Shown here: positions 3,164 through 36,725 of the stretch, in pieces | Layout of the letters: the number at the start of each line of letters is the position of its first letter | Position numbering within the stretch: position 1 is the first letter of the stretch | From: Penicillus capitatus | Lineage: Eukaryota; Plantae; Chlorophyta | Direction of reading: 5' to 3' | Assembly (NCBI GenBank): GCA_965649825.1 | Contig: OZ287695.1 | Location: forward strand, 1,973,288-2,037,287 | Length of the DNA: 64,000 nt | Made by a program: the position numbers and the translations under genes | Notes under the pieces: model-generated | Seen by the model: only the letters and a program-made list of their open reading frames with translations | The model's database searches: none | What the model was told of the DNA's origin: nothing

Positions 3164-4446
3164 CGCTCGGATGCACCCGGAACCGGGCCACGGTGATGTG
3201 ACGTGTTCGGTGTAACAGGTTACACTGCTCGCGCGGCTCGCGCGGTTACACCTAGGTGTAACCTGTTACACCGAACACGCCCCGCCGACGACTTCGGCCG
3301 AAGACCTTCGGGGAACGCCACGGACGGTCGCCGGCCGTTTGCACGCCTCTCGGCGACCACCGCGGGCCTCTGTGGATGTCCGCGGCGTTCCTTTCGCTCG
3401 GATGCACCCGGAACCGGGCCACGGTGATGTGACGTGTTCGGTGTAACAGGTTACACTGCTCGCGCGGCTCGCGCGGTTACACCTAGGTGTAACCTGTTAC
3501 ACCGAACACGCCCCGCCGACGACTTCGGCCGAAGACCTTCGGGGAACGCCACGGACGGTCGACGGCCGCCTGCACGCCTCTCGGCGACCACCGCGGGCCT
3601 CTGTGGATGTCCGCGGCGTTCCTTTCGCTCGGATGCACCCGGAACCGGGCCACGGTGATGTGACGTGTTCGGTGTAACAGGTTACACTGCTCGCGCGGCT
3701 CGCGCGGTTACACCTAGGTGTAACCTGTTACACCGAACACGCCCCGCCGACGACTTCGGCCGAAGACCTTCGGGGAACGCCACGGACGGTCGACGGCCGC
3801 TTGCACGCCTCTCGGCGACCACCGCGGGCCTCTGTGGATGTCCGCGGCGTTCCTTTCGCTCGGATGCACCCGGAACCGGGCCACGGTGATGTGACGTGTT
3901 CGGTGTAACAGGTTACACTGCTCGCGCGGCTCGCGCGGTTACACCTAGGTGTAACCTGTTACACCGAACACGCCCCGCCGACGACTTCGGCCGAAGACCT
4001 TCGGGGAACGCCGCGGACGGTCGACGGCCGCTTGCACGCCTCTCGGCGACCACCGCGGGCCTCTGTGGATGTCCGCGGCGTTCCTTTCGCTCGGATGCAC
4101 CCGGAACCGGGCCACGGTGATGTGACGTGTTCGGTGTAACAGGTTACACTGCTCGCGCGGCTCGCGCGGTTACACCTAGGTGTAACCTGTTACACCGAAC
4201 ACGCCCCGCCGACGACTTCGGCCGAAGACCTTCGGGGAACGCCGCGGACGGTCGACGGCCGCTTGCACGCCTCTCGGCGACCACCGCGGGCCTCTGTGGA
4301 TGTCCGCGGCGTTCCTTTCGCTCGGATGCACCCGGAACCGGGCCACGGTGATGTGACGTGTTCGGTGTAACAGGTTACACTGCTCGCGCGGCTCGCGCGG
4401 TTACACCTAGGTGTAACCTGTTACACCGAACACGCCCCGCCGACGA
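3164..4446. repeat. 231-bp tandem repeat array, block 1 (5 units + 128 bp)
   Basis: Unit starts (cgctcggatgcacc) at 3164, 3395, 3626, 3857, 4088, 4319; units differ only at a few variable positions near one site. Confidence 0.97.
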
Positions 4447-4628
4447 GAGAGAAGTTCATTAAACCAGGAGGGGCGTCGCCTGTGGCATGTTGCCCTAGGT
4501 CTCCTGGGGTAGTACAATGTCCCATACTGTTTTGCTTTCAAACAAGGGGTATGAACTTGATGTCCTTTCGAGTCCTATCGGTGTTTGTTGTTTGTTGTTT
4601 TTGCAGGTGCTTGAGGGTGTCTTTCGCT

Positions 4629-7600
4629 CTATGGTTGTGGTCCTCGTTCGAGAGCTTGATATATTATCTTGCAGTATTCGTCGAGTCTGTAGTACAGATT
4701 GGCTTCTTGAACAAATGTTCCTAGGTCTTCGATTGTGACTTGTTCGTGTAAAAATATCTGTTGTCGTTGTTGTTTTAGTGCTTCACATCGGAACATGTGA
4801 TCTCGGGTTTCTGAGTGCTTGCCACATAGTCTGCAACTTATGTCTTCTTTTTCGTGTCCTCTTCTTTGTAGATATTCTCGTGTCGGTGAGTGTCCCGATA
4901 GTATTTGGTTTATGCGGGATACTGCTGGTCGCTTCCAGTCTGTTGACGAGAACCATGGTTTCATTCTGGTGTGACGGGTCCATCCTGTGCGTTTTAAGTC
5001 TTGAGATTTATCTGCTGTCTTCCATAATCTGTCCGTACGGTCTTCGATGTATTTTTGTATGATGTCCTTGTATCCTTCGTCTTCTATTAGGCATTTGACT
5101 TCTCGGTCTTCCTTTCTGGTATGGTGTCTGGGTTGTTGTTCTTCGTGCGTCTTATTTGGTATGCGTCTGAGTTCGGCTCGGAGGAGGTTGATCGGGGTGC
5201 AGTGTGCTTCGGCAGTCGCTGGCTTGTGTGGTTCTTCTTGTCTTCTGAGTGTTGTCGGTGCAGTTTTGAGTAGGGTCCAGAGTGTGAGGTCGCTGGGAGG
5301 TGTTATATGTGCGAGGGCAGTGGCTGTTTCGGCGGAGGTGGTGCGGTTGAGTCCTGTAATTGCGAGGCTTGCCAGTCTTGCGATGCGGTCTAATCTTCTA
5401 CTGTCGCTTTGACTGTTTAAGCGGGTGATCCATATTTCTGCTCCATATTGTATGATGGGTTGGATGCAAGATTGATACAGGGTTCTGATTATGATCGGCG
5501 CCGTTCCCCAGAATGTTCTTGAAAGTCTTCTGATGGTATTCAGTCGGTGTCCGGCCTTAGTTGTCAGCTTGTTCATGTGGCTGGTAAATGTCATGCGGCT
5601 GTCAAAGATGATTCCGAGGTATTTCATTTCTTCGACTGGGTTGATCGTCGTTCCCTTTATCACGAGTGTCGGGCTCGTTTGGTCTCTGTTTCTCTGGAAT
5701 ATGACGAGCTGGGTTTTATCAATATTGAGCTTCATGTGGTTATTGTCACACCACTGCTCAAAGCCGTTTAGTGCTCGCTGTATGTCCGCTGTGTTGTTGT
5801 CCCGTTGTAACGTTTGATAAAGTAGTACGTCATCCGCATACATTTGTACATGGACGTTCTCTGGGATGTGTACTGGTATATCAGCTGCGTAGAGTGCGTA
5901 TAGTATGGGGCTCAAAGGTGATCCCTGGGGTAGTCCTCGGCTTGGTGTATAGTGATGTCGCTGTTCTTGTATGATTATGTGATTGGTTCGGTTTTCGAGG
6001 AGAGATTGAATTATATGTATTTTGTCTCGGGGCATGTGCCATTTCTTCAGCTTCGATTGTAAGATCTGCGGGCTGACTCTGTCGTATGCACTAGAGAGGT
6101 CCAGACTGATCCCCATTGTCCTCTGTCGAGTATTTAGTGATGTCCAGATCGTGTGGGTGTAGTGCCAAAGTGGGTGTCTTGTGCTTCTCCCCTTGCGAAA
6201 TCCGTGCTGGCTTTCTGGGAGTATGTGATTCGTCTCTGCCCATAGACTGACTTCGTGGGCGATCATGCCTTCGAGGATCTTGGACATCGTTGGCAGTAGT
6301 GTGATCGGGCGGTAGTGTGCAGGTTCTTCTCCTGATTTGCCCGGTTTGAGTATGTTGCAGATTATTCCTTTCTTCCACTGGCTTGGGTAGTGCCCGGTTC
6401 GGGCGATGGCGTTGTATATTCTTGCCAGCGGGTTAGCCAGGACCATCGCGTTCGCTCGTAGTGCGATGAAAGGTATGTCATCGTGTCCCGGTGCTGTTTG
6501 TCTGCGTTTTCTTAAGAGCTCAAATGCTACTTGTGTTCTGGTTGTGAAGTCTCGTTCTTGGTCTGGCCCTTGTTGCTGGGTGTTGTCTGGGCTGTCCACG
6601 GGGCTTCTCGGGCGGGAGTGTCTTGTGTGATTATCGTCTGTGTTTTCGTTTATGTCTTCTGGGAAATAGTGCTCCGCCAGTGCATTTGCGATCAGTTCCG
6701 GTTCCGTCTGGAATTGTCCTCTGATTTTCAGTCGTGTGATGGCTGTTCTCTTCTTCTTTCCCTCTAGTCTTCTAAGGGCTTCCCAGCAGGTGTCCAGAGT
6801 CGTTTCTTCAGTGAATTTCTGGAAGGATTGTAGTTTCTTTGTTTGTATCATTCTTTTCCACTCCGCTTTCTTTTCCTCATGTTGTGGTGTGTTCTTGGGT
6901 GTGTTTTTCAGCTCAGAATATTTCGCTCGGGCTTCAGTATCGAACCATGTTTTGCGGTATGGACTGGGTTTTGATTGCGGTACGCAGAGTCGCATGGTGG
7001 CTTGTATGGCGTTTGTGAGGAGGAGTACTTGTCTATCGATTTCGTCTGGGGTTTCAAGGTCCGAGGGTTGTATCGCCTGGATGAACATGTTGAGTATTTC
7101 TTTGAACTCCTTCCAGTCAGTTTGTCTCCAATTCCACGTTGCCTTCTCCTGGAGCTCTTGTCGTCCGGTGTGTATCTCAAATGTGATCAAGTTATGGTCA
7201 CTGGACGGAATTACTTCTGGTAGGACTCTCCATTGTTGTATTCTTTCGGCGATTGGCATGGATGCAGCTGTAATGTCGAGCCATTGCTCGCAGTCGCTGC
7301 CTCGTTGGAAAGTCGGGGCGCTATCTGGCTCGTTGATGATATCGAGGTTTCTCGTTATCAATACTTCTTCTACTGTGTTTCCTTCAGGATTGCTCTGACT
7401 TCGGCCCCACCATCTGGAGTGGGCGTTGGCGTCTCCTCCCGTGAGTATTGTGACATTGTTCCGTTTCGCTTGTTCTATGGATTCTTCCCAGTCTTCGATC
7501 CCTTTCAGGGTAACTGGTTGCAAGTAAAATGAGTTGAGGCGTATCTTGTGTGCTCCTTGGTTTAGTTCTATTGTGGTCGATCTGGTGGCTTGGGTCTCGG

Positions 7601-7865
7601 TCGGTCGGTGTGGCACTGTTTTCCTGATGAGAATGCCAGCTCCACTATCATCTTCTGCGTGTTGGTAGTGCCAGTCGTATCCGAACGGTAGTTGTTTTCC
7701 TCTTCTTAGGCTTTGGGGTGGGTCGCTGATTAATACTGCATCTATCTTGTGCTCGTCTAGGTGAATTTTGAGTTCCTCCCAGGCTGCTGGTGAGCTTGCT
7801 AGGTTTATTTGTCCTACACTGTATTTGTCCTTTGTGGGTGTTCGCGGTGGGGCGTGCTCTTTCAT
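4629..7865 (-). CDS. LINE ORF2: APE endonuclease, reverse transcriptase, C-terminal CCHC (1078 aa)
   Basis: QINLAS, GDANAH, WLDIT, SDH (APE); YRPITLL, QHGFR, DLSSAYD, GLPQGSPLSP, YADD, YLG (RT); CRLC...HMFRC; no RNase H seen. Confidence 0.96.
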   Translation of the reverse strand: MKEHAPPRTPTKDKYSVGQINLASSPAAWEELKIHLDEHKIDAVLISDPPQSLRRGKQLPFGYDWHYQHAEDDSGAGILIRKTVPHRPTETQATRSTTIELNQGAHKIRLNSFYLQPVTLKGIEDWEESIEQAKRNNVTILTGGDANAHSRWWGRSQSNPEGNTVEEVLITRNLDIINEPDSAPTFQRGSDCEQWLDITAASMPIAERIQQWRVLPEVIPSSDHNLITFEIHTGRQELQEKATWNWRQTDWKEFKEILNMFIQAIQPSDLETPDEIDRQVLLLTNAIQATMRLCVPQSKPSPYRKTWFDTEARAKYSELKNTPKNTPQHEEKKAEWKRMIQTKKLQSFQKFTEETTLDTCWEALRRLEGKKKRTAITRLKIRGQFQTEPELIANALAEHYFPEDINENTDDNHTRHSRPRSPVDSPDNTQQQGPDQERDFTTRTQVAFELLRKRRQTAPGHDDIPFIALRANAMVLANPLARIYNAIARTGHYPSQWKKGIICNILKPGKSGEEPAHYRPITLLPTMSKILEGMIAHEVSLWAETNHILPESQHGFRKGRSTRHPLWHYTHTIWTSLNTRQRTMGISLDLSSAYDRVSPQILQSKLKKWHMPRDKIHIIQSLLENRTNHIIIQEQRHHYTPSRGLPQGSPLSPILYALYAADIPVHIPENVHVQMYADDVLLYQTLQRDNNTADIQRALNGFEQWCDNNHMKLNIDKTQLVIFQRNRDQTSPTLVIKGTTINPVEEMKYLGIIFDSRMTFTSHMNKLTTKAGHRLNTIRRLSRTFWGTAPIIIRTLYQSCIQPIIQYGAEIWITRLNSQSDSRRLDRIARLASLAITGLNRTTSAETATALAHITPPSDLTLWTLLKTAPTTLRRQEEPHKPATAEAHCTPINLLRAELRRIPNKTHEEQQPRHHTRKEDREVKCLIEDEGYKDIIQKYIEDRTDRLWKTADKSQDLKRTGWTRHTRMKPWFSSTDWKRPAVSRINQILSGHSPTREYLQRRGHEKEDISCRLCGKHSETRDHMFRCEALKQQRQQIFLHEQVTIEDLGTFVQEANLYYRLDEYCKIIYQALERGPQP

Positions 7866-9763
7866 TGTTGCTTCTGTTCTTGTTCTTGTCTTTCGCGCTG
7901 TTTGCGGATGCGTTCGCTTCTTCTGGGGCCTGGTGTCTGCGTTTCCGGGCTGGGCCGGTCGTGGTGTTGTTGACTAGTTGTTGGTGGGTGGTCTTGTCTC
8001 CATCCCGACAGGTCTTCTAGTCCTTGCTGGATTTCTTCTGAGAGAGCTATGAACGGGTTTTCGGACTCAATGGTTGCAGCCTCTTGTCGTCTTGGTTCTT
8101 CATTGTGTGCTGGCGGCGCCGTTGGCGAGGTGCCTGGTCTTGCTTCTGTGCGGTGTTCGTTTCGTGAAGGTTCCGTGTGTCCTGCTGTCTTTTGCGTTAC
8201 TTGGGTGCCTCCATGTGGGGGAAGCGAGAGGCTTCGTAGCCATTCTGCGTGAGCAGTGTTTGCAGTTGCTCCTGGAGAGGAAGTCCTCGGGGTCTGGTCA
8301 GTGGTCGTGCCAAGATTCGGCTTATCCGGGGTAGCTTCTGTAGTTGATTGATTCTCTTCGGCCGTCAGATCGATGGGCGTCGGGGTCTCCATCCGGCGTC
8401 GCGAAATGCTTGGTTCGGGAGGCTGTTCCGCTTCTCTGCTGGGAGTAATCATTTCGTCTGCCTCTTCCCGTTCTCTTTCTTCTGTGTTTCTTTTGGCTCC
8501 TCTGTTCGTCGAGTCGACTTCCATGGTGCGGTTGCTTGTTTTCCATTTTTCTTGTTGTGCGAATTCTCTGACATAGCAGGGGTATCCCACATATATTCCG
8601 GTCTTCTGAGCCATACGGGTGATGATTTCTGGTGGGCCAACCAATCTTCCGGTGGAGGTGGGTTCAGGAGCACTGCCGTCCACTTTTCTGTGGAATCGCA
8701 CAAAAGTAAGAGTCGCCGTTTGTAACGTTTCTGGCTGTACTCCCAGCCATGTCGCATTTTCCGGGTCTTTTAGTTTCTCCACGACCGCTCTATGTGATAG
8801 GAAGCGGTCTACTCCCTCGACTACCACGCTGGGGACCGATGTGTCTTGATGGCTGGGTTTGGGCTGCCAGCAGCCCAGCATGTGGAGGTCTATCTCAGGG
8901 AAATAGTTGTCCCTGAGATAGGTCATCACGTTTTGGTCTAATTGTAGCAGCATATCTCCAGAGGTGAGCCCCCTCAGGTATTGCACCTGTCCGCCGTGGT
9001 TCTTGGCCCAAGTCGTTAGGGCGTCCTTCATCATGTTGTAGGTGGGGCGCTTGATCGAAGCCGCTTCGATGACGGGCGAGATGAAGACTTGTCTGGCCAT
9101 GTTCTGGTCCTCCGGTGAGCTACGTTTCCACATCTCGCTCATGATTCTTCTTCTTGCTTGTTGCTCTGGGGTTTGTGTTTCGTATGCTGGCTTGGGTCTT
9201 TGCTGTCTTGAGATCATTGTCCAGGGTATTTGTTCTGATGGACTGCTCGGGAAGTAATTGGATTTGGCCACTTCGGCGTACGACACTGTTCTGGTCGTCT
9301 GCTGCATTTGCTGTGCGGTCGACTGGACTCCGGTAGTCGTTCGTTGTTGTTGTTGTAGGAGAGAGGGCAGGGTCGGTTGATAGAGGGGGTTCGCCTGGAC
9401 TGTTGTCGGCCTTACGGTTTGTTGCGCTTCGCGGGACATGTCGCTCTGGCCAATGCCGTAGCCGCCCTCCATGGCTTCGATTAGGTAGAGGGCCGTTTTT
9501 AGGGCGTGGTGGTCGACTCCAGCTTGCTCGAGGGTTGAGAGACACCCATGTATGCGCCTCATCGTCGTCCTGTAAAACCCTCGCTTGTCCGATCTACCGA
9601 GTTTTTCGTCCGCGTCCGTTTGGTCTGCCCAGTCCGAGGCCGTCATCGGCCGTCCAAAGCGCGTCGTTTGCGTCGGTTGTTGAGCGTTTTCGGTCGGGGT
9701 CTCGTTTTGCGCTGCCGCCGCAAAACTCCCGCTGCCTCCAGGTGGAGGTGTAGATGATTGCAT
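7862..9763 (-). CDS. LINE ORF1 (633 aa from first ATG), Gag-like/RRM-like nucleic-acid-binding protein
   Basis: Long ORF upstream of ORF2 with ATGA stop/start overlap; segment PSVVVEGVD...CYVREF resembles R1/I/Jockey ORF1; no CCHC knuckle. Confidence 0.85.
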   Translation of the reverse strand: MQSSTPPPGGSGSFAAAAQNETPTENAQQPTQTTRFGRPMTASDWADQTDADEKLGRSDKRGFYRTTMRRIHGCLSTLEQAGVDHHALKTALYLIEAMEGGYGIGQSDMSREAQQTVRPTTVQANPLYQPTLPSLLQQQQRTTTGVQSTAQQMQQTTRTVSYAEVAKSNYFPSSPSEQIPWTMISRQQRPKPAYETQTPEQQARRRIMSEMWKRSSPEDQNMARQVFISPVIEAASIKRPTYNMMKDALTTWAKNHGGQVQYLRGLTSGDMLLQLDQNVMTYLRDNYFPEIDLHMLGCWQPKPSHQDTSVPSVVVEGVDRFLSHRAVVEKLKDPENATWLGVQPETLQTATLTFVRFHRKVDGSAPEPTSTGRLVGPPEIITRMAQKTGIYVGYPCYVREFAQQEKWKTSNRTMEVDSTNRGAKRNTEEREREEADEMITPSREAEQPPEPSISRRRMETPTPIDLTAEENQSTTEATPDKPNLGTTTDQTPRTSSPGATANTAHAEWLRSLSLPPHGGTQVTQKTAGHTEPSRNEHRTEARPGTSPTAPPAHNEEPRRQEAATIESENPFIALSEEIQQGLEDLSGWRQDHPPTTSQQHHDRPSPETQTPGPRRSERIRKQRERQEQEQKQQ

Positions 9764-9779
9764 TATCGAGAAGGTGCCC

Positions 9780-10253
9780 CCCCGCCGACGACTTCGGCCG
9801 AAGACCTTCGGGGAACGCCACGGACGGTCGACGGCCGTTTGCACGCCTCTCGGCGACCACCGCGGGCCTCTGTGGATGTCCGCGGCGTTCCTTTCGCTCG
9901 GATGCACCCGGAACCGGGCCACGGTGATGTGACGTGTTCGGTGTAACAGGTTACACTGCTCGCGCGGCTCGCGCGGTTACACCTAGGTGTAACCTGTTAC
10001 ACCGAACACGCCCCGCCGACGACTTCGGCCGAAGACCTTCGGGGAACGCCGCGGACGGTCGACGGCCGCTTGCACGCCTCTCGGCGACCACCGCGGGCCT
10101 CTGTGGATGTCCGCGGCGTTCCTTTCGCTCGGATGCACCCGGAACCGGGCCACGGTGATGTGACGTGTTCGGTGTAACAGGTTACACTGCTCGCGCGGCT
10201 CGCGCGGTTACACCTAGGTGTAACCTGTTACACCGAACACGCCCCGCCGACGA
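9780..10253. repeat. 231-bp array, block 2 (exactly 2 units + 12-bp duplication)
   Basis: 474 bp = 2x231 + 12. Confidence 0.97.
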
Positions 10254-10435
10254 GAGAGAAGTTCATTAAACCAGGAGGGGCGTCGCCTGTGGCATGTTGC
10301 CCTAGGTCTCCTGGGGTAGTACAATGTCCCATACTGTTTTGCTTTCAAACAAGGGGTATGAACTTGATGTCCTTTCGAGTCCTATCGGTGTTTGTTGTTT
10401 GTTGTTTTTGCAGGTGCTTGAGGGTGTCTTTCGCT

Positions 10436-13400
10436 CTATGGTTGTGGTCCTCGTTCGAGAGCTTGATATATTATCTTGCAGTATTCGTCGAGTCTGTAGT
10501 ACAGATTGGCTTCTTGAACAAATGTTCCTAGGTCTTCGATTGTGACTTGTTCGTGTAAAAATATCTGTTGTCGTTGTTGTTTTAGTGCTTCACATCGGAA
10601 CATGTGATCTCGGGTTTCTGAGTGCTTGCCACATAGTCTGCAACTTATGTCTTCTTTTTCGTGTCCTCTTCTTTGTAGATATTCTCGTGTCGGTGAGTGT
10701 CCCGATAGTATTTGGTTTATGCGGGATACTGCTGGTCGCTTCCAGTCTGTTGACGAGAACCATGGTTTCATTCTGGTGTGACGGGTCCATCCTGTGCGTT
10801 TTAAGTCTTGAGATTTATCTGCTGTCTTCCATAATCTGTCCGTACGGTCTTCGATGTATTTTTGTATGATGTCCTTGTATCCTTCGTCTTCTATTAGGCA
10901 TTTGACTTCTCGGTCTTCCTTTCTGGTATGGTGTCTGGGTTGTTGTTCTTCGTGCGTCTTATTTGGTATGCGTCTGAGTTCGGCTCGGAGGAGGTTGATC
11001 GGGGTGCAGTGTGCTTCGGCAGTCGCTGGCTTGTGTGGTTCTTCTTGTCTTCTGAGTGTTGTCGGTGCAGTTTTGAGTAGGGTCCAGAGTGTGAGGTCGC
11101 TGGGAGGTGTTATATGTGCGAGGGCAGTGGCTGTTTCGGCGGAGGTGGTGCGGTTGAGTCCTGTAATTGCGAGGCTTGCCAGTCTTGCGATGCGGTCTAA
11201 TCTTCTACTGTCGCTTTGACTGTTTAAGCGGGTGATCCATATTTCTGCTCCATATTGTATGATGGGTTGGATGCAAGATTGATACAGGGTTCTGATTATG
11301 ATCGGCGCCGTTCCCCAGAATGTTCTTGAAAGTCTTCTGATGGTATTCAGTCGGTGTCCGGCCTTAGTTGTCAGCTTGTTCATGTGGCTGGTAAATGTCA
11401 TGCGGCTGTCAAAGATGATTCCGAGGTATTTCATTTCTTCGACTGGGTTGATCGTCGTTCCCTTTATCACGAGTGTCGGGCTCGTTTGGTCTCTGTTTCT
11501 CTGGAATATGACGAGCTGGGTTTTATCAATATTGAGCTTCATGTGGTTATTGTCACACCACTGCTCAAAGCCGTTTAGTGCTCGCTGTATGTCCGCTGTG
11601 TTGTTGTCCCGTTGTAACGTTTGATAAAGTAGTACGTCATCCGCATACATTTGTACATGGACGTTCTCTGGGATGTGTACTGGTATATCAGCTGCGTAGA
11701 GTGCGTATAGTATGGGGCTCAAAGGTGATCCCTGGGGTAGTCCTCGGCTTGGTGTATAGTGATGTCGCTGTTCTTGTATGATTATGTGATTGGTTCGGTT
11801 TTCGAGGAGAGATTGAATTATATGTATTTTGTCTCGGGGCATGTGCCATTTCTTCAGCTTCGATTGTAAGATCTGCGGGCTGACTCTGTCGTATGCACTA
11901 GAGAGGTCCAGACTGATCCCCATTGTCCTCTGTCGAGTATTTAGTGATGTCCAGATCGTGTGGGTGTAGTGCCAAAGTGGGTGTCTTGTGCTTCTCCCCT
12001 TGCGAAATCCGTGCTGGCTTTCTGGGAGTATGTGATTCGTCTCTGCCCATAGACTGACTTCGTGGGCGATCATGCCTTCGAGGATCTTGGACATCGTTGG
12101 CAGTAGTGTGATCGGGCGGTAGTGTGCAGGTTCTTCTCCTGATTTGCCCGGTTTGAGTATGTTGCAGATTATTCCTTTCTTCCACTGGCTTGGGTAGTGC
12201 CCGGTTCGGGCGATGGCGTTGTATATTCTTGCCAGCGGGTTAGCCAGGACCATCGCGTTCGCTCGTAGTGCGATGAAAGGTATGTCATCGTGTCCCGGTG
12301 CTGTTTGTCTGCGTTTTCTTAAGAGCTCAAATGCTACTTGTGTTCTGGTTGTGAAGTCTCGTTCTTGGTCTGGCCCTTGTTGCTGGGTGTTGTCTGGGCT
12401 GTCCACGGGGCTTCTCGGGCGGGAGTGTCTTGTGTGATTATCGTCTGTGTTTTCGTTTATGTCTTCTGGGAAATAGTGCTCCGCCAGTGCATTTGCGATC
12501 AGTTCCGGTTCCGTCTGGAATTGTCCTCTGATTTTCAGTCGTGTGATGGCTGTTCTCTTCTTCTTTCCCTCTAGTCTTCTAAGGGCTTCCCAGCAGGTGT
12601 CCAGAGTCGTTTCTTCAGTGAATTTCTGGAAGGATTGTAGTTTCTTTGTTTGTATCATTCTTTTCCACTCCGCTTTCTTTTCCTCATGTTGTGGTGTGTT
12701 CTTGGGTGTGTTTTTCAGCTCAGAATATTTCGCTCGGGCTTCAGTATCGAACCATGTTTTGCGGTATGGACTGGGTTTTGATTGCGGTACGCAGAGTCGC
12801 ATGGTGGCTTGTATGGCGTTTGTGAGGAGGAGTACTTGTCTATCGATTTCGTCTGGGGTTTCAAGGTCCGAGGGTTGTATCGCCTGGATGAACATGTTGA
12901 GTATTTCTTTGAACTCCTTCCAGTCAGTTTGTCTCCAATTCCACGTTGCCTTCTCCTGGAGCTCTTGTCGTCCGGTGTGTATCTCAAATGTGATCAAGTT
13001 ATGGTCACTGGACGGAATTACTTCTGGTAGGACTCTCCATTGTTGTATTCTTTCGGCGATTGGCATGGATGCAGCTGTAATGTCGAGCCATTGCTCGCAG
13101 TCGCTGCCTCGTTGGAAAGTCGGGGCGCTATCTGGCTCGTTGATGATATCGAGGTTTCTCGTTATCAATACTTCTTCTACTGTGTTTCCTTCAGGATTGC
13201 TCTGACTTCGGCCCCACCATCTGGAGTGGGCGTTGGCGTCTCCTCCCGTGAGTATTGTGACATTGTTCCGTTTCGCTTGTTCTATGGATTCTTCCCAGTC
13301 TTCGATCCCTTTCAGGGTAACTGGTTGCAAGTAAAATGAGTTGAGGCGTATCTTGTGTGCTCCTTGGTTTAGTTCTATTGTGGTCGATCTGGTGGCTTGG

Positions 13401-13672
13401 GTCTCGGTCGGTCGGTGTGGCACTGTTTTCCTGATGAGAATGCCAGCTCCACTATCATCTTCTGCGTGTTGGTAGTGCCAGTCGTATCCGAACGGTAGTT
13501 GTTTTCCTCTTCTTAGGCTTTGGGGTGGGTCGCTGATTAATACTGCATCTATCTTGTGCTCGTCTAGGTGAATTTTGAGTTCCTCCCAGGCTGCTGGTGA
13601 GCTTGCTAGGTTTATTTGTCCTACACTGTATTTGTCCTTTGTGGGTGTTCGCGGTGGGGCGTGCTCTTTCAT
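10436..13672 (-). CDS. LINE ORF2, copy 2 (APE-RT-CCHC, 1078 aa)
   Basis: Translation in the ORF track appears identical to copy 1. Confidence 0.96.
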   Translation of the reverse strand: MKEHAPPRTPTKDKYSVGQINLASSPAAWEELKIHLDEHKIDAVLISDPPQSLRRGKQLPFGYDWHYQHAEDDSGAGILIRKTVPHRPTETQATRSTTIELNQGAHKIRLNSFYLQPVTLKGIEDWEESIEQAKRNNVTILTGGDANAHSRWWGRSQSNPEGNTVEEVLITRNLDIINEPDSAPTFQRGSDCEQWLDITAASMPIAERIQQWRVLPEVIPSSDHNLITFEIHTGRQELQEKATWNWRQTDWKEFKEILNMFIQAIQPSDLETPDEIDRQVLLLTNAIQATMRLCVPQSKPSPYRKTWFDTEARAKYSELKNTPKNTPQHEEKKAEWKRMIQTKKLQSFQKFTEETTLDTCWEALRRLEGKKKRTAITRLKIRGQFQTEPELIANALAEHYFPEDINENTDDNHTRHSRPRSPVDSPDNTQQQGPDQERDFTTRTQVAFELLRKRRQTAPGHDDIPFIALRANAMVLANPLARIYNAIARTGHYPSQWKKGIICNILKPGKSGEEPAHYRPITLLPTMSKILEGMIAHEVSLWAETNHILPESQHGFRKGRSTRHPLWHYTHTIWTSLNTRQRTMGISLDLSSAYDRVSPQILQSKLKKWHMPRDKIHIIQSLLENRTNHIIIQEQRHHYTPSRGLPQGSPLSPILYALYAADIPVHIPENVHVQMYADDVLLYQTLQRDNNTADIQRALNGFEQWCDNNHMKLNIDKTQLVIFQRNRDQTSPTLVIKGTTINPVEEMKYLGIIFDSRMTFTSHMNKLTTKAGHRLNTIRRLSRTFWGTAPIIIRTLYQSCIQPIIQYGAEIWITRLNSQSDSRRLDRIARLASLAITGLNRTTSAETATALAHITPPSDLTLWTLLKTAPTTLRRQEEPHKPATAEAHCTPINLLRAELRRIPNKTHEEQQPRHHTRKEDREVKCLIEDEGYKDIIQKYIEDRTDRLWKTADKSQDLKRTGWTRHTRMKPWFSSTDWKRPAVSRINQILSGHSPTREYLQRRGHEKEDISCRLCGKHSETRDHMFRCEALKQQRQQIFLHEQVTIEDLGTFVQEANLYYRLDEYCKIIYQALERGPQP

Positions 13673-15570
13673 TGTTGCTTCTGTTCTTGTTCTTGTCTTT
13701 CGCGCTGTTTGCGGATGCGTTCGCTTCTTCTGGGGCCTGGTGTCTGCGTTTCCGGGCTGGGCCGGTCGTGGTGTTGTTGACTAGTTGTTGGTGGGTGGTC
13801 TTGTCTCCATCCCGACAGGTCTTCTAGTCCTTGCTGGATTTCTTCTGAGAGAGCTATGAACGGGTTTTCGGACTCAATGGTTGCAGCCTCTTGTCGTCTT
13901 GGTTCTTCATTGTGTGCTGCCGGCGCCGTTGGCGAGGTGCCTGGTCTTGCTTCTGTGCGGTGTTCGTTTCGTGAAGGTTCCGTGTGTCCTGCTGTCTTTT
14001 GCGTTACTTGGGTGCCTCCATGTGGGGGAAGCGAGAGGCTTCGTAGCCATTCTGCGTGAGCAGTGTTTGCAGTTGCTCCTGGAGAGGAAGTCCTCGGGGT
14101 CTGGTCAGTGGTCGTGCCAAGATTCGGCTTATCCGGGGTAGCTTCTGTAGTTGATTGATTCTCTTCGGCCGTCAGATCGATGGGCGTCGGGGTCTCCATC
14201 CGGCGTCGCGAGATGCTTGGTTCGGGAGGCTGTTCCGCTTCTCTGCTGGGAGTAATCATTTCGTCTGCCTCTTCCCGTTCTCTTTCTTCTGTGTTTCTTT
14301 TGGCTCCTCTGTTCGTCGAGTCGACTTCCATGGTGCGGTTGCTTGTTTTCCATTTTTCTTGTTGTGCGAATTCTCTGACATAGCAGGGGTATCCCACATA
14401 TATTCCGGTCTTCTGAGCCATACGGGTGATGATTTCTGGTGGGCCAACCAATCTTCCGGTGGAGGTGGGTTCAGGAGCACTGCCGTCCACTTTTCTGTGG
14501 AATCGCACAAAAGTAAGAGTCGCCGTTTGTAACGTTTCTGGCTGTACTCCCAGCCATGTCGCATTTTCCGGGTCTTTTAGTTTCTCCACGACCGCTCTAT
14601 GTGATAGGAAGCGGTCTACTCCCTCGACTACCACGCTGGGGACCGATGTGTCTTGATGGCTGGGTTTGGGCTGCCAGCAGCCCAGCATGTGGAGGTCTAT
14701 CTCAGGGAAATAGTTGTCCCTGAGATAGGTCATCACGTTTTGGTCTAATTGTAGCAGCATATCTCCAGAGGTGAGCCCCCTCAGGTATTGCACCTGTCCG
14801 CCGTGGTTCTTGGCCCAAGTCGTTAGGGCGTCCTTCATCATGTTGTAGGTGGGGCGCTTGATCGAAGCCGCTTCGATGACGGGCGAGATGAAGACTTGTC
14901 TGGCCATGTTCTGGTCCTCCGGTGAGCTACGTTTCCACATCTCGCTCATGATTCTTCTTCTTGCTTGTTGCTCTGGGGTTTGTGTTTCGTATGCTGGCTT
15001 GGGTCTTTGCTGTCTTGAGATCATTGTCCAGGGTATTTGTTCTGATGGACTGCTCGGGAAGTAATTGGATTTGGCCACTTCGGCGTACGACACTGTTCTG
15101 GTCGTCTGCTGCATTTGCTGTGCGGTCGACTGGACTCCGGTAGTCGTTCGTTGTTGTTGTTGTAGGAGAGAGGGCAGGGTCGGTTGATAGAGGGGGTTCG
15201 CCTGGACTGTTGTCGGCCTTACGGTTTGTTGCGCTTCGCGGGACATGTCGCTCTGGCCAATGCCGTAGCCGCCCTCCATGGCTTCGATTAGGTAGAGGGC
15301 CGTTTTTAGGGCGTGGTGGTCGACTCCAGCTTGCTCGAGGGTTGAGAGACACCCATGTATGCGCCTCATCGTCGTCCTGTAAAACCCTCGCTTGTCCGAT
15401 CTACCGAGTTTTTCGTCCGCGTCCGTTTGGTCTGCCCAGTCCGAGGCCGTCATCGGCCGTCCAAAGCGCGTCGTTTGCGTCGGTTGTTGAGCGTTTTCGG
15501 TCGGGGTCTCGTTTTGCGCTGCCGCCGCAAAACTCCCGCTGCCTCCAGGTGGAGGTGTAGATGATTGCAT
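13669..15570 (-). CDS. LINE ORF1, copy 2 (633 aa)
   Basis: As copy 1, with one visible amino-acid change (APPAH vs APAAH). Confidence 0.85.
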   Translation of the reverse strand: MQSSTPPPGGSGSFAAAAQNETPTENAQQPTQTTRFGRPMTASDWADQTDADEKLGRSDKRGFYRTTMRRIHGCLSTLEQAGVDHHALKTALYLIEAMEGGYGIGQSDMSREAQQTVRPTTVQANPLYQPTLPSLLQQQQRTTTGVQSTAQQMQQTTRTVSYAEVAKSNYFPSSPSEQIPWTMISRQQRPKPAYETQTPEQQARRRIMSEMWKRSSPEDQNMARQVFISPVIEAASIKRPTYNMMKDALTTWAKNHGGQVQYLRGLTSGDMLLQLDQNVMTYLRDNYFPEIDLHMLGCWQPKPSHQDTSVPSVVVEGVDRFLSHRAVVEKLKDPENATWLGVQPETLQTATLTFVRFHRKVDGSAPEPTSTGRLVGPPEIITRMAQKTGIYVGYPCYVREFAQQEKWKTSNRTMEVDSTNRGAKRNTEEREREEADEMITPSREAEQPPEPSISRRRMETPTPIDLTAEENQSTTEATPDKPNLGTTTDQTPRTSSPGATANTAHAEWLRSLSLPPHGGTQVTQKTAGHTEPSRNEHRTEARPGTSPTAPAAHNEEPRRQEAATIESENPFIALSEEIQQGLEDLSGWRQDHPPTTSQQHHDRPSPETQTPGPRRSERIRKQRERQEQEQKQQ

Positions 15571-15587
15571 TATCGAGAAGGTGCCCC

Positions 15588-16616
15588 CCCCGCCGACGAC
15601 TTCGGCCGAAGACCTTCGGGGAACGCCACGGACGGTCGACGGCCGTTTGCACGCCTCTCGGCGACCACCGCGGGCCTCTGTGGATGTCCGCGGCGTTCCT
15701 TTCGCTCGGATGCACCCGGAACCGGGCCACGGTGATGTGACGTGTTCGGTGTAACAGGTTACACTGCTCGCGCGGCTCGCGCGGTTACACCTAGGTGTAA
15801 CCTGTTACACCGAACACGCCCCGCCGACGACTTCGGCCGAAGACCTTCGGGGAACGCCGCGGACGGTCGACGGCCGCTTGCACGCCTCTCGGCGACCACC
15901 GCGGGCCTCTGTGGATGTCCGCGGCGTTCCTTTCGCTCGGATGCACCCGGAACCGGGCCACGGTGATGTGACGTGTTCGGTGTAACAGGTTACACTGCTC
16001 GCGCGGCTCGCGCGGTTACACCTAGGTGTAACCTGTTACACCGAACACGCCCCGCCGACGACTTCGGCCGAAGACCTTCGGGGAACGCCGCGGACGGTCG
16101 ACGGCCGCTTGCACGCCTCTCGGCGACCACCGCGGGCCTCTGTGGATGTCCGCGGCGTTCCTTTCGCTCGGATGCACCCGGAACCGGGCCACGGTGATGT
16201 GACGTGTTCGGTGTAACAGGTTACACTGCTCGCGCGGCTCGCGCGGTTACACCTAGGTGTAACCTGTTACACCGAACACGCCCCGCCGACGACTTCGGCC
16301 GAAGACCTTCGGGGAACGCCGCGGACGGTCGACGGCCGCTTGCACGCCTCTCGGCGACCACCGCGGGCCTCTGTGGATGTCCGCGGCGTTCCTTTCGCTC
16401 GGATGCACCCGGAACCGGGCCACGGTGATGTGACGTGTTCGGTGTAACAGGTTACACTGCTCGCGCGGCTCGCGCGGTTACACCTAGGTGTAACCTGTTA
16501 CACCGAACACGCCCCGCCGACGACTTCGGCCGAAGACCTTCGGGGAACGCCACGGACGGTCGCCGGCCGCTTGCACGCCTCTCGGCGACCACCGCGGGCC
16601 TCTGTGGATGTCCGCG
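15588..16616. repeat. 231-bp array, block 3 (4 units + 105 bp)
   Basis: Periodicity 231; ends at ...ggatgtccgcg (16616). Confidence 0.97.
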
Positions 16617-18532
16617 TCTTGCGCGGACCATCCCGTTTTACATTATCTTGATGGTGCGATTGTGGGGGCCGGACTCTAAGGGAACTGGATGTACGAACGT
16701 CAGGCTTGCTGACAACGTCGGAGAGCTATGGCATGCAGGTGCAGTCGAAGAAGATCGAATCCGGGAAATCGGAGGTGGAGTTCCTGGGGTACGAACTAAG
16801 ATCCGGCGGAAGCGTGAGTGCGGAGAGGTACCTGCGGGAACGCAGAAGGAAGGTGGGCGGTGCGATCGAGACAAAGAGAGAGCTCCAGAGTTTATTGGGG
16901 ACTCTCAACGTGGCCCGAAACTTCATTCCATGACTAAGCGAAAGAACTGCGGCGTTGCAGGAGCTCTTGACGAACATGACGAGCAATGAGATGTGTAAAG
17001 AGGAGAAAGAACAGGCCTGCGTGCTAGCGGAAAAGGCCTGGGAGGAAGTATTGGAGACATGCGTCGCGGTGCAGATGGCCATACCGGAAAACCCTCGGTC
17101 CGAGCTCTCCACTTACTGGTCAACAGAGGCAGTAGGGTATGTGTTATTTATCAATGGAGAGGGAGGGCGTCGGGTCGTGGACGTCAATTCGACCAGATTC
17201 GCCGGTCAAGTGGCGGTGAGCAGCTTCCTAGGTGATATGCGTGGAATTGTGCGGGGTTCGAAAAAGACCCGGCATATCGTTTGGACCGCCCCGGTCGAAA
17301 TCTGTTGCGATAACCAAGGCACAGTGTCCCGGCTGCGGAAGGGACAGGTCATGGGCGACGATGTCCGGTGCTCCCGACTCATCGCCTGGTTGCTCGGAAG
17401 TTTCCCGCAGGCACAATTCGAATGTGTCCCTGGAGCGAGGAACCAAATTGCCGATCGCCCCAGTAGAAGCAAGAGTCGACAGAAGGGCGAGGAAGAGGCT
17501 GTCGGAGTTGTTTCGGTCGGTCAACGACCTCCGGACAGCGTAGTCCGACGGCGGTTGGAGCAGGCGCACCGAGGCCACTGGCATGCGGAAAGGACCCGGT
17601 GCCATTTGAAGCGAGATGGGCCCGCCTGGCCTGGTGCGAGGAAGGAGGTGTTGCGGTACGTGAAACAGCGCCCCGATTGCCAACACTTTCGCGGCCTAGA
17701 GCATCGAGAACCTTGGGCGGGAACGGCGACGACTCGCCCGAACGATGTAGCCTTCGGGGACTTTCTGGGACCACTTACGTTAAGCCGGGACCGGGGAAAG
17801 CGGGTTGTCTGGTACTGATCGACGGTTTTAGCCGCTTCACGCATTTACACTTGGCGAAGACCCCCCCCCCACCGAAAATGCGGTCTTGCGGGGTTTGCGG
17901 CGATGGGAGAAAACCTTGGCGTGGAGACATGGGCACACACGAATCCTCATGGCGGATAGAGGGGCTGCATTCACCGGAGGAAGGGTACGAGCATTCTGCC
18001 ACGAGCGAGGGATCCGGCGACAATGGTCGGCGAGTCACGCTCCTTGGAGTAACGGGGCAGCCGAGCGCCAAGTTGGAAATGCGAAGAGCAGATTGGCCAG
18101 GACACTGTGGAAGTCTACCGCAGACATCTCGCTGCATACGTTGGAGAAAATTTTGAACGGAGGAAATTGCGAGGCGACGGGTTTTGCACCAACGGAACTT
18201 CGCTGGGGACGACGTCGGGATGGATCCCTAATGACCAGGGCCGAATGGACCAGGCCACAAGTTTGGCAAGACAGAGACGGGCTGTTAGAAGACAGAAGGA
18301 AAGGGAATCCTTCCTGCAGCGGCTTCCGAACAGACCGCCGTTGCAGAAAGGACAATGGGTACCAGCTTACGAACCTCGTAAGAAGCGACATGCTCTTCAC
18401 TCGCCGTGGACGGGGCCACACCTTACCGCTGAGCAGCAGGGGTCTCGGCTATGGATATTGCAAAAGAATGGAACATCCCGGAGGATAGGTCCCTTTCACG
18501 TGGAGCACCAGCGTTTGTTTCACGCACCTTGA
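16617..18532 (+). pseudogene. 5'-truncated, degenerate Gypsy pol (RT C-half, RNase H, integrase)
   Basis: HYLDGAIVG (decayed YxDD), VEFLGYE, LQSLLGTLN, CCDN, NQIADRPSR, H...H...C integrase Zn, GDFLGP, LIDGFSRF, MADRG, SNGAAER, WTGPH; stops and frameshifts. Confidence 0.88.
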
Positions 18533-24764: not shown

Positions 24765-24915
24765 TGTGAGCGACAGACGCTCGCGACAGAGACGGATGGG
24801 ACATAATGATAGAAGATAAATTGTCGCGAAAAACGACAGAGCGTCCCTTTTAAAAAAGTTTCGATAGGGTTTTGTGTTTCGCCGCGATTTTCGCGTTCGC
24901 AGTGAAAATAGCACA
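24765..24915 (+). repeat. 5' LTR (151 bp)
   Basis: TGTGAGCG...ATAGCACA, identical to 29385-29535. Confidence 0.95.
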
Positions 24916-27900
24916 TGGTTTCGGAGCGAGTTGTAACTGTAGTGGCCACTCTAGTGGCCACTACCCTCGGGAGACTCTTCGTCGGTTGGCTCTGGGAGCC
25001 GGCCGATAGTCCTAAAGGCGGCGACGAAGACTACTGCCCGGTCGATGAGGACGAAGAATTTATGTCGTCTCGTTGGGCGAACGCAAAATGGCTGCTTTGG
25101 GTGTTTAGCGCTTTGACGGTTATGACTAGCCTCTCCATCGGAGGCGCACTGCTTGTTATATGGAGATGGAGACGGAAAGATTTATCTTCCGAGCCGGCGA
25201 CCTGTAATCGTGAAGATGGAGTCGCGCTTGCACTATCGCAGCCATGGCCTTATGATTCAGAGCGCCGCGTCGGTAGGAACCGACGATTGAGCGAATGGAC
25301 AGTCCGAACACATCGGCAGACTATCGCGAAGCTGGAATTTGAGATAGTGGACCCATTTCAACGGGTTAGAGCCTTGACAGCGCATTTCGATGAGACGACG
25401 CCATTTGGCGACTCAGTGACCGCCGATATTCGTTCGGTCTGTGTGGCATATACAGGAGGTGGCCCCTTACCTCCTAACACAAAGGGAGCAAGAGCTGACG
25501 TTGCATCGCGCGGTGAGGAGATGTGGAAGGCTGTAGCCGCGCGCTTGGAGCGTCTGCATGGGGGAGTGGAGGACGTGCCAGACCGCGTGCAATACTTGGT
25601 TGAGTTGCGCCGCGGGGAGACCGAATCGGCCTTGGCCTTTGTCAACCGTTGCAGAGTCGTCTATTTCGGACAGTGTGAAGGAGTGAGCATGAGGCGCGCC
25701 ATGAATGTGGTGATGGCGAAGCTCGAACCAGAGTTCGTAAGCTACCTCAGGAACAACGCGGATTACAATCTCCTCGATTTCGAAGAACTACAAGCTTTAG
25801 CAACTCGATACCACACGTGGAGTAATGTGAAGAGACCAAGATCAGGTCACAGGCATCACATCGGGCACATCGGACAGGAGGAAGATTCCGTGGTCGATCC
25901 GTACAACGCAGATCTGGTCGATCCCGAAGATCCAGCGTATCAAGAACGCGAGGGCGAAGTTGTGAACATGACGAAGAAGATGGACGATACTGCCGGCAAA
26001 GCAAAGCAGTTTCACGGACATTGTTTTAGATGCGGAAAATACGGACATCGTAAACGCGATTGTAAGGAGAAGAGTGGTTCTGAGTATACCATGCCTTCGA
26101 CGCATACGGCGACTAATGCGGCGATGATGAAGAGTTCTGCCGTTGAAGAGGGGCTCCCACTCTTGCATCTCACCGTCAATCTTGGTCAAACCCGGGATAC
26201 TCAAAGGAAGACGCGGATGCTGGTCGATACTGGCGCTGCTCGCAGTGTGATACCTTTGCGCTTGGTTCGAAAGCAAGGGTGGCCCGTCGATCCCTCCGGA
26301 GCAAAGTCTCTCCAAGCCTTCAATGGTCAAGTGGAGAGGACATCGGGTGTGACGGACTTATGGACTACGATCGGCCGTGAGACTAGAAAGGTGCAATTTG
26401 AAGTCTCATCCTCAGCATCGCAGCCTTTGATTGGGAAACCAACTCTCACTGCATTTGGTGCCATCATTGACTGTGTATCCGATGCATTACGCATTGAGAA
26501 TGGGGAACTTATTCCATGCTCTGCGGTTAAGAGTCAAGTCGACGTGGAATCCGAAGATCGACAAAGACGACCTGACAAAAATGATCTGGTGATACGGGAA
26601 GATGAGACTAGGACGGCAAAGCCATTCCGACGGGAAAACGCTGTTTTCTTACCCCTCGGCCGATCGTTAGTGCTCAAGCCGATGGACATGACGACAGTGC
26701 AGTTGCCATATAGTGTCATGAACGGAGAGGTGCTCCTATCGGGTTCCGGAAATCTGCCGGCCGGAATAGCCGTCATCGGAGCCACGAGACAGCGAGGGGT
26801 ACCTTTGAAAGTTCATTTCATCAATCTTTCAAGCGAACCCCAGCAACTGGGAGCAAAGAACGGAGCCGTCGGCTTTCTAGTCCCCCAAGAGACGTCAGTG
26901 TTCCTACACCGAGTGTCAGGAGAGATAGTTCCCATTGAACGCAATCGCCCAGCAAAGCGGGCGGTTATTGCCACCTGTACGGTCATGGAAGAGCTGCAGA
27001 AGAAGTTTCCGGAGGTGCTTCGCGACGGCGTCGGATTGACGACCCACTATGCAGTCACAGATGCAGGATTGCGCGAAAATGTCGATTGGAGCCGACTTAA
27101 GCTGAGATTTCATTCGCAAGCAGAGTGTGACAAAATGCGACCGATGGTAAGAGATCTCCTTGACCTAGACGTTATCGAGACGGTCAAGACCCGGCCAACA
27201 GTTGTCACCCCGATGATCATAGTGACGTCCCCAAACGGGAAGTCCCGTTTGGTCCATGATTTTCGTCTATTGAATGCAGCTTCGCTCGCACTACAAGCCA
27301 ACGCTTTAGACAGAATGAAGACAATCGAATCAATACCTGAACGAGGGGTTTGGAGTACAATTGACCTGGCGAAGGGATATATGCAGATACCTCTCGATGA
27401 GTCAATTCGACAGTATTTCGGTTTCGAGCTGCAAGGTCAATGGTACAGATTTAAGCGAGTACCGTTCGGTTGGATTCATTCGGGGACGCATTTTACGACG
27501 GCTCTCAACATGACGATGGCCGAAATAGCTCCAAAGTTGCCTCCGGATGCAGTGATTCGAGCCTATGTTGACGACATATTACTGGGTACCCAGACCGAGG
27601 AATCTCATGATACTGCGTTGGGGGTGATTTTTCAGGCCTTATCGGCTCACGGATGGTGTTGCAACCCGCAGAAAATCCGTTTAAAACGTCCGGCTGTCGA
27701 GTTCCTCGGGATTGAGATCGGGCGCGACGGCATCCGACCATCCTCGGGCCTCATTAAAAAGCTCTCAGACCTCTGTATACCGAACAATACAAAAGAGTTG
27801 CGGGTCGTGTTTGGTCTGTTGAACCAACTGGTCAGATTCCAAGGTCATCAGCATGCCATCGTCGCCCCGCTGCGACAGTATCAAGGAAAGCCTCCGGATG

Positions 27901-29426: not shown

Positions 29427-29535
29427 TGATAGAAGATAAATTGTCGCGAAAAACGACAGAGCGTCCCTTTTAAAAAAGTTTCGATAGGGTTTTGTGTTTC
29501 GCCGCGATTTTCGCGTTCGCAGTGAAAATAGCACA
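29385..29535 (+). repeat. 3' LTR (151 bp)
   Basis: Identical to the 5' LTR. Confidence 0.95.
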
Positions 29536-36215: not shown

Positions 36216-36392
36216 CATTTTTTACAAAAAAAAAATAAAAAAATAAAAAAAAAATAATGATGTCACACTCTGGAAAGTGTGACATAAAAATCAAAAAAAA
36301 AACAAATAGTTTCATGGGGCTGTTTTCTCTTTATGCTGTTTTCCGGCCATCAACCTTCGCTTTGTTGTGATTGGCCGTGTTTTTTGACTATT

Positions 36393-36725
36393 TTGCTGCC
36401 CGGAGGCTGGCTACCATGTTTTCTGGATTATCTTGCTGCCCGGAGGCTGGCTACCATGTTTTCTGGATTATCTTGCTGCCCGGAGGCTGGCTACCATGTT
36501 TTCTGGATTATCTTGCTGCCCGGAGGCTGGCCACACTGTCCTACTCTCTGTTGCTGCGTGGAGGCTGCATGCATTGTCCTACCCTATCTTGCTGCCTGGA
36601 GGCTGGCTGCCATGTTTTCTGGATTGTTCTGCTGCGTGGAGGCTGCATGCATTGTCCTACTCGATCTTGCTGCCTGGAGGCTGCATGCATTGTCCGATCT
36701 GCCGTTTTTTACCTGGAGGCTGCCG
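36393..36725. repeat. ~40-bp minisatellite (3 perfect units, then diverged units)
   Basis: TTGCTGCCCGGAGGCTGGCTACCATGTTTTCTGGATTATC at 36393, 36433, 36473; core TGCTGCNNGGAGGCTG persists in later units. Confidence 0.92.

Follow-up and report, generated by a model that had tools for sequence, protein, structure and literature searches.

A satellite array that is interrupted twice, at the same nucleotide, by the same retrotransposon raises the question of whether the element selects this site or whether chance insertion and later amplification have produced the pattern. The array lies at positions 3164–16616 of the window, the term used here for the whole 64,000-nucleotide stretch that was analysed, which corresponds to positions 1,973,288 to 2,037,287 of contig OZ287695.1 from the chlorophyte Penicillus capitatus. 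Both interruptions are 5.3-kb, minus-strand copies (A and B) of a long interspersed nuclear element (LINE). The reading favored here, with a chance somewhat better than even, comprises four parts: The LINE is young and of the apurinic/apyrimidinic endonuclease (APE) type; it entered the array in one event of target-primed reverse transcription (TPRT), which was subsequently duplicated; a second hit is present in another contig, L001; and the lineage prefers this monomer site.

The satellite array and its monomer

The array consists of three plus-strand blocks of a 231-bp repeat, each with 99% matches as judged by Tandem Repeats Finder. The left block (3164–4446) holds 5.6 units and starts at monomer position 116; the inter-LINE block (9780–10253) measures 474 bp, corresponding to 2 × 231 + 12; and the right block (15588–16616) holds 4.5 units and ends at monomer position 105. 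The units are arranged head to tail, 12 of them at approximately 99% identity in the window and approximately three in L001, and hence form a satellite. Both LINEs occupy the same monomer position in the same orientation and are flanked by a 12-bp target-site duplication (TSD), CCCCGCCGACGA. The two copies of this TSD are found at 4435–4446 and 9780–9791 for LINE A and at 10242–10253 and 15588–15599 for LINE B. In total, the 12-mer occurs 14 times, always on the plus strand and always in register, compared with a chance expectation of 0.01 as judged by shuffles. Excision of both inserts, each with one 12-mer, leaves 2762 bp in phase, which is 12 × 231 minus 10. A preliminary description of this locus, made from the sequence alone, had reported the shared nucleotide and orientation, the length of the restored array and the inter-LINE block of two units plus 12 bp, and all of these were reproduced. 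The edges of the array, monomer position 116 (at 3164) and monomer position 105 (at 16616), likewise amount to whole units minus 10 bp.

The monomer is palindromic, as had also been described. It features perfect inverted repeats of 24 and 14 nt, a 20-bp palindrome and a 12-bp palindrome, and its folding energy of −79 kcal/mol corresponds to z = −8.5 compared with shuffled sequences. The 12-nt TSD is the exact spacer between the inverted repeat with 24-nt arms, whose last base is monomer position 231, and the 12-bp palindrome at positions 13–24; therefore, both nicks would be located at palindrome edges. No Rfam family was found in the monomer at gathering score in a scan of the whole window, and at E ≤ 10 the array gave only hairpin-driven matches to microRNA models, far below threshold (37.9 versus 97 bits). 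A known small-RNA gene—5S, small nuclear RNA (snRNA), spliced leader (SL) RNA or tRNA—was dropped as the identity of the target, since Rfam shows no RNA gene in the monomer. The target had been called unfamiliar, which holds with respect to Rfam and does not hold with respect to its category: Target-specific LINEs that use satellites or transposons have been published (PMC4494074, PMC4640811). Neither the monomer nor the LINE occurs elsewhere in the 64-kb window. An exact scan of JGI metagenome contigs and IMG/VR with a 24-mer of the monomer yielded 0 matches, and exact look-up of the 74-aa and 56-aa open reading frames (ORFs) inside the monomer returned no record.

The LINE and its coding capacity

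Without their 5′ filler nucleotides, LINE A (4447–9772) and LINE B (10254–15579) are each 5326 bp long. Copy A has its 3′ end, ...GAACTTCTCTC, at 4447 and its conserved 5′ start, TTCTCGATAATG, at 9772. Including filler, the inserts span 4447–9779 (A, 5333 bp) and 10254–15587 (B, 5334 bp). Both ORFs are open in both copies: ORF1 (7862–9763 in A and 13669–15570 in B) encodes 633 aa, ORF2 (4629–7865 and 10436–13672) encodes 1078 aa, and the two overlap by ATGA. The 5′ untranslated region (UTR) comprises 9 nt and the 3′ UTR approximately 182 nt, followed by a (TC)3 tail and no poly(A). ORF2 features an Exo_endo_phos_2 endonuclease domain (PF14529, E 8.9e-17), then the reverse transcriptase (RT) domain RVT_1 (PF00078, E 3.3e-35), and at its C terminus a zf-RVT/CCHC match that is weak (23.9 bits, under the 27.5-bit cut-off). 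ORF1 has neither a Pfam domain nor CCHC knuckles and contains only three cysteines; an AlphaFold2 model of its conserved core reached a mean predicted local distance difference test score of 46, too poor for a fold comparison. The domains of ORF2 (APE, RT and zf-RVT) and the two open frames identify the insert, a young element, as a coding-intact APE-type non-LTR (long terminal repeat) retrotransposon. The order of endonuclease and RT in ORF2 and the 12-bp TSD are in line with the same assignment in the preliminary description. Terminal repeats are absent, and the TSD, the simple-repeat tail and a variable 5′ junction are LINE hallmarks as well. In copy A, the ORF1 frame is, in addition, open upstream into the monomer (9763–9922), giving a 686-aa ORF from a GTG at 9922; in copy B, one extra filler G breaks this frame, and the openness in A is probably incidental.

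Among solved structures, the endonuclease matches only members of the R1 clade, namely TRAS1 over the whole domain (E 1.2e-14) and R1Bm (8e-5), and no L1 endonuclease structure is matched at E ≤ 1. The RT matches L1 ORF2p with approximately 1e-16 in the same kind of comparison, which is a generic match. At window positions 13522–13530 (ORF2 residues 48–50, SDP), and equally in copy A and L001, Asp replaces the catalytic Glu, giving ISDPP. This Glu is kept in TRAS1 and R1Bm (QE) and in two more distant relatives of the LINE described below (SEPP in L003 and CEPP in L004). The gag-like ORF1 with CCHC zinc knuckles that is a trait of the R1 clade has no counterpart here. The earlier label R1/I-like is thus backed by the endonuclease and not by ORF1. 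The similarity of the endonuclease may hint at an affinity with the R1 clade, of which the LINE is at most a candidate member.

Junctions and proposed insertion mechanism

The 3′ junction reads TTCTCTC/TCGTCGGCGGGG, with the slash marking the border of LINE and target, in three of three resolved copies (A, B and L001), which stand for approximately two events. At the 5′ end, filler separates the LINE from the TSD. It is 7 nt long in copy A (9773–9779, minus strand; GGGCACC on the LINE strand) and 8 nt long in copy B (15580–15587, minus strand; GGGGCACC), the latter being the copy A filler with one extra G. The complementarity between tail and target amounts to 2 nt.

These junctions are compatible with entry of the 5326-bp LINE into the palindrome-rich 231-bp satellite by TPRT. 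The bottom strand would be nicked between monomer positions 12 and 13, that is, between CCCCGCCGACGA and CTTCGG on the plus strand, and the freed ...GACGA-3′ end would prime on the UC-ending tail of the RNA. A cut of the top strand 12 nt away, between positions 231 and 1, would give rise to the 12-bp duplication, and the 5′ junction would then receive 7 or 8 filler nucleotides. The LINE, along with two monomers, could subsequently have been duplicated by an unequal crossover of identical monomers. The 12-bp duplication is regarded as canonical endonuclease-dependent TPRT because the family usually makes TSDs of 11–14 bp. We infer that the choice of site is steered by the endonuclease or, alternatively, by RNA–target homology.

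Copies A and B as a probable single, duplicated insertion

Copies A and B differ by two substitutions (8113/13920 and 8405/14212), one of which alters an ORF1 residue (P551A), and by a single C/G homopolymer indel at the 5′ junction, which is one G in a run of seven or eight. The filler GGG(G)CACC is common to both. The private variant pair A40/T58 is found in the monomer that adjoins each LINE at its 5′ end (at 9780 and 15588), and the next monomer is of the reference type both times. The region 4204–15818 accordingly forms a higher-order tandem duplication, in which a unit of 5807/5808 bp—reference-type monomer, TSD, LINE and A40/T58 monomer—occurs twice (4204–10010 and 10011–15818). Because of the mere two substitutions, the common filler and the common flanking variants, A and B are most likely one insertion event duplicated at the DNA level and not independent insertions. 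Hence, the window alone demonstrates co-amplification of LINE and satellite and not repeated targeting. Two earlier suggestions part company here: The co-propagation of LINE and satellite is borne out by the 5807-bp unit of LINE plus two monomers present twice, and the use of the two window LINEs as evidence of site specificity falls away, since their matching filler and flanking variants most likely mark one duplicated event.

Contig L001 as a candidate second insertion

L001 is an 11.6-kb contig (ENA ERZ25074695) that encodes an identical ORF2. A single nucleotide sets its 3′ LINE piece, which covers the element from position 599 onward, apart from copy B. The BLAST identity of 99.1% between L001 and the window was discarded as a measure of LINE divergence since it results from array rearrangements. 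Downstream of the 3′ junction follow approximately three monomers, one of them rearranged, and then the 5′ end of another LINE piece. The 5′ junction of this piece is GAAG/TTCTCG: The array stops at ...CCGAAG, the position of the putative bottom-strand nick, TSD and filler are both absent, and the LINE begins at TTCTCG, exactly the conserved first base. The adjacent monomer has C51 and a 1-nt deletion unlike the window and has A40 and T58 in common with it. Because the 5′ junction differs, at the same nick and beside a different monomer variant, L001 probably represents a second, independent, blunt and filler-free insertion at this nick.

The two LINE pieces of L001 (1–1535 and 7597–11583) break at CATAC/GAAAC without LTRs or a TSD, with gag, protease (PR) and RT sequence on one side of the break and integrase sequence on the other. 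Near the contig ends, a 173-bp segment is repeated (332–504 = 11225–11397). The break at element position 599 could reflect an insertion, recombination or assembly collapse, which are indistinguishable here.

Relatives of the LINE and family habits

Protein searches returned few relatives, with ORF2 identities of 42–75%. The nearest by ORF2 (L002, 75% aa identity) is an old, 5′-truncated copy, and its 3′ flank is not the monomer. L003 (9330–14640 of ENA ERZ26696514, ctg303759) is 93% identical to the window LINE at the nucleotide level over its first 1.45 kb, whereas its ORF2 is 42% identical; the lineage is therefore a mosaic, a pattern suggestive of exchange between LINE lineages by modular recombination or by template switching. 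Over the 5′ end and ORF1, L003 and the window LINE are 93–94% identical, and the N terminus of the L003 ORF2 is frameshifted. The homology with L003 begins exactly at window position 15579/9772, at TTCTC, and L003 is embedded in unique DNA with its own 11–12-bp TSD. This boundary identifies the monomers as target and not as part of the LINE, and GGG(G)CACC between TSD and TTCTC as 5′ filler. L004 and L005 belong to a sister family whose ORF2 is 53% identical to that of the window, and agree with each other at 98%. They represent independent insertions in unrelated, non-repetitive sites with the TSDs TTCGACACCAGT and TGTCACCTTAG, end in a (TTC)n tail, and have dissimilar fillers, one being ATTATTA and the other AACCAC; the boundaries of L005 are confirmed by an empty paralogous site in L005.

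In this family, TSDs measure 11–14 bp and 5′ UTRs 6–9 nt; the tails are short simple repeats, in many cases microhomologous to the target, and a filler of 0–8 nt varies between independent events: 7–8 nt in the window, 1 nt in L003, 0 nt in L001 and 6–7 nt in L004 and L005. Neither the monomer nor a tandem array is present at the insertion site of any of L002–L005. The relatives have no convincing consensus target motif, only a weak T-start or CGTC-like tendency and the microhomology of tail and target. In L005 (12561–12580), the 9-mer GTGTAACCG, which derives from the repeated GTGTAAC/GTTACAC motif of the monomer, stands directly after the sister-family TSD; by our own arithmetic, approximately 0.05 such matches are expected by chance, which makes it marginal. 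A search of JGI metagenomes with an ORF2 profile returned only relatives at 28–30% identity.

Site preference and alternative explanations

Anatomy, TSD, junctions, duplication pattern and the sites of the relatives are direct observations. A true preference of this LINE lineage for the satellite site appears fairly probable, because the copy in L001 most likely arose from an insertion of its own at this nick. Two hits at the same nucleotide and in the same orientation would occur by chance with a frequency of 1/462 (231 positions × 2 orientations with an even spread, by our own arithmetic). In addition, no dispersed or source copy of this ORF2 was found among 5.8 billion proteins: It was returned from L001 only, and the next match has 75% identity. 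The resemblance of the endonuclease to the site-specific enzymes of the R1 clade speaks for a preference as well.

Several points weigh against this reading. The preference rests on approximately two independent events, and the census of copies is protein-based and covers indexed assemblies, of which the window's own contig is not one. The L001 junction could be a secondary deletion of 19–20 nt (TSD plus filler) from a junction of the window type. The L001 array is otherwise rearranged (a 27-bp duplication and indels), so that the locus is either rearrangement-prone or imperfectly assembled; the contig is only 11.6 kb long, and, with a break at element position 599 beside retroelement sequence in each of its LINE pieces, it may represent a collapsed, permuted or rearranged assembly path. 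With Asp in place of the catalytic Glu, the activity of the endonuclease is putative. Finally, two sister-family copies with 98% identity lie in unrelated unique sites, and L002, the nearest by ORF2, likewise has its insertion outside the monomer. Because the relatives occupy unrelated sites, any specificity would be specific to this lineage, and strict specificity is no family trait. The earlier claim of site-specific insertion thus survives in part: The L001 copy at the same nick with a different 5′ junction speaks for it, and the reduction of A and B to one event and the sites of the relatives speak against it.

An assembly artefact, in which a single real insertion was falsely duplicated in a repetitive region, would fit the near-identity of the two units and the location of the sole indel in a G run of 7/8 nt, a typical long-read error; it is nevertheless very improbable in view of the two substitutions that separate the copies, including the P551A change, of the placement of the 13.4-kb structure midway in the 64-kb window, and of L001, a separate contig with the same succession of LINE, monomers and LINE and with three monomers in between. 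That the 231-bp units belong to the LINE itself, as a 5′ UTR or promoter built of monomers like that of mouse L1, would agree with monomers directly upstream of each ORF1 and with a non-repeat 5′ UTR of just 9 nt. This idea has next to no probability left and was dropped on account of the TSD, since removal of each LINE with one of the 12-bp copies around it restores the phase, and of the L003 boundary, where the element starts at the same TTCTC after unrelated unique DNA and with its own TSD; the sister elements, in addition, lack monomers, and their 5′ UTRs are just as short. A weightier alternative, though still an unlikely one, is a single chance insertion without specificity, from which A, B and L001 all descend by unequal crossing-over or segmental duplication, the L001 5′ junction being a later, microhomology-mediated deletion. 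A and B clearly are DNA-level duplicates, all copies are 1–2 nt apart, the L001 array is rearranged, its adjacent monomer has A40 and T58 as in the window, both L001 pieces break at the same element position by a retroelement, which suggests DNA-level duplication, and the sister family is not site specific. On this account, however, the deletion must have taken exactly the TSD copy and the filler (19–20 nt), leaving the array to end precisely at the nick and the LINE to begin at the first base defined by L003. The adjacent L001 monomer differs at position 51 and by an indel, and for an insertion this recent a nearly identical source copy is required, none of which was found outside the array.

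A preference for the site may also be real without sequence recognition by the endonuclease, which is considered quite improbable. Either the monomer sequence at the 3′ end of a read-through transcript would anneal to monomers that carry a nick, a route proposed for R1/R2 co-transcripts, or the enzyme or a pre-existing lesion would act at the base of extruded hairpins or cruciforms. Co-transcription as a means of strengthening target-specific integration is an established idea (PMC4494074), the tail lacks poly(A) and has 2 nt of complementarity to the target, both nicks lie at palindrome edges with the 12-nt TSD as the spacer, the monomer is strongly structured (z = −8.5), and the catalytic Glu is changed to Asp. 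On the other hand, a 12-bp TSD is the family norm at unrelated, non-palindromic targets, which favors ordinary endonuclease cleavage, and with one type of target only, geometry is inseparable from sequence. Slightly less probable still is a structure-directed LINE that reads DNA geometry and has specialized on, and been amplified with, a hairpin satellite, an idea based on the nicks at the feet of two extrudable palindromes and on the Glu-to-Asp change; that the TSD would then be the single-stranded spacer of a cruciform pair is given the same low credence. The preferred reading thus remains a young LINE with a preference for the monomer site, inserted once in the window and duplicated there and inserted a second time in L001.

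Sequences surrounding the array

The right flank of the array (16617–18500, plus strand) is a degenerate Ty3-like pol that is truncated at the array edge and separate from LINE and satellite. It starts just before YLDG, a remnant of the RT YxDD motif, and continues with RNase H and integrase. The left flank is a degenerate gag-PR-like sequence. It does not continue the pol of the right flank, and the array was therefore rejected as a simple insertion into a flanking Ty3-like element. An apparently intact Ty3-like LTR retrotransposon of 4771 bp is located at 24765–29535. Its gag-pol ORF (24915–29426, 1503 aa) features zinc knuckle, protease, RT, RNase H and integrase, and its LTRs are very short (151 bp), 100% identical and overlap the ORF ends.

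Further tandem repeats are found at 35451–35589 (a 30-bp unit repeated 4.6 times within overlapping ORFs) and at 36378–36695 (nested units of 38, 40, 78 and 116 bp, repeated two to seven times). An ORF at 52106–52897 carries a protein kinase domain (Pkinase, E 1.4e-35). Across the ten large ORFs that were scanned, it is the sole domain of an ordinary cellular kind; the window is otherwise dominated by retroelements. The minus-strand gene pair at 57159–58235 and 58886–61993 has no Pfam matches and encodes a 1035-aa protein rich in GG-containing, beta-helix-like repeats and a 358-aa probable multi-pass membrane protein. A homologous gene pair is present in L003 in the same order at 27–28% identity, and L004 has nucleotide similarity to part of that L003 region.

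Comparison with known target-specific elements

According to a working criterion, a LINE is target specific if the same target flanks more than 20% of its copies (PMC4494074). Identical junctions within a tandem array call for caution in such counts, as they can stem from unequal crossing-over and are not countable as independent insertions; the 5′ filler nucleotides can serve as signatures of individual events. If the preference is not real, the locus represents an ordinary LINE captured and amplified in a higher-order repeat of the satellite. Such a capture would account for the two occurrences of the 5807-bp unit of LINE and two monomers, which agree in their junctions and flanking variants, and would leave unexplained both the separate junction type of L001 at the same nick and the absence of a dispersed source copy.

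The R1 clade, with R1 in 28S ribosomal DNA and TRAS and SART in telomeric repeats, resembles the window LINE in several respects. Its members combine an APE endonuclease with an RT and lack RNase H; their insertions fall on a single nucleotide of a target arranged in tandem repeats and generate a short TSD; and their copies are spread by unequal crossing-over of the host array, with variants of the 5′ junction marking separate events. The ORFs of SART1 are translationally coupled, which the ATGA overlap of the window LINE recalls. The differences are an ORF1 without CCHC knuckles or a Pfam domain, a (TC)3 tail instead of poly(A), a target that is a non-genic, hairpin-rich satellite without an Rfam match, and close relatives that are not site specific.

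The Tx1 clade comprises APE-type LINEs that have chosen other repeats, such as transposons, microsatellites and satellites: Tx1 inserts into the piggyBac transposon Tx1D, Keno into U2 genes, Kibi and Koshi into (TC)n and (TTC)n, and Tx1-Mar into Mariner-N4_AMi, and some Tx1 families target satellites (PMC4494074, PMC4640811). Tandem insertions that sandwich a TSD, and target alterations that range from a TSD to an unaltered site, are likewise described for this clade (PMC4494074), and ORF2 has a C-terminal CCHC motif as in the window LINE. In contrast to the latter, Tx1 is known from animals, and the window endonuclease matches endonucleases of the R1 clade and not those of the L1 group. YURE and Utopia, which prefer U2 snRNA genes and, in the case of YURE, a U2-derived satellite, share the combination of a LINE with a satellite, low-copy targets and the logic of a safe harbor (PMC4640811). 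They differ from the window LINE by a restriction-like endonuclease (RLE) in place of an APE-type enzyme and by a satellite derived from an RNA gene, to which the window monomer has no similarity.

The locus would at most add a new target for a known kind of element. Its lineage displays a modular mosaic of ORF1 and ORF2. If the preference is true, a non-genic, cruciform-prone satellite would join the safe-harbor targets of LINEs, and the lineage would provide a very young case, with close relatives still inserting elsewhere, that is useful for studying the origin of target specificity.

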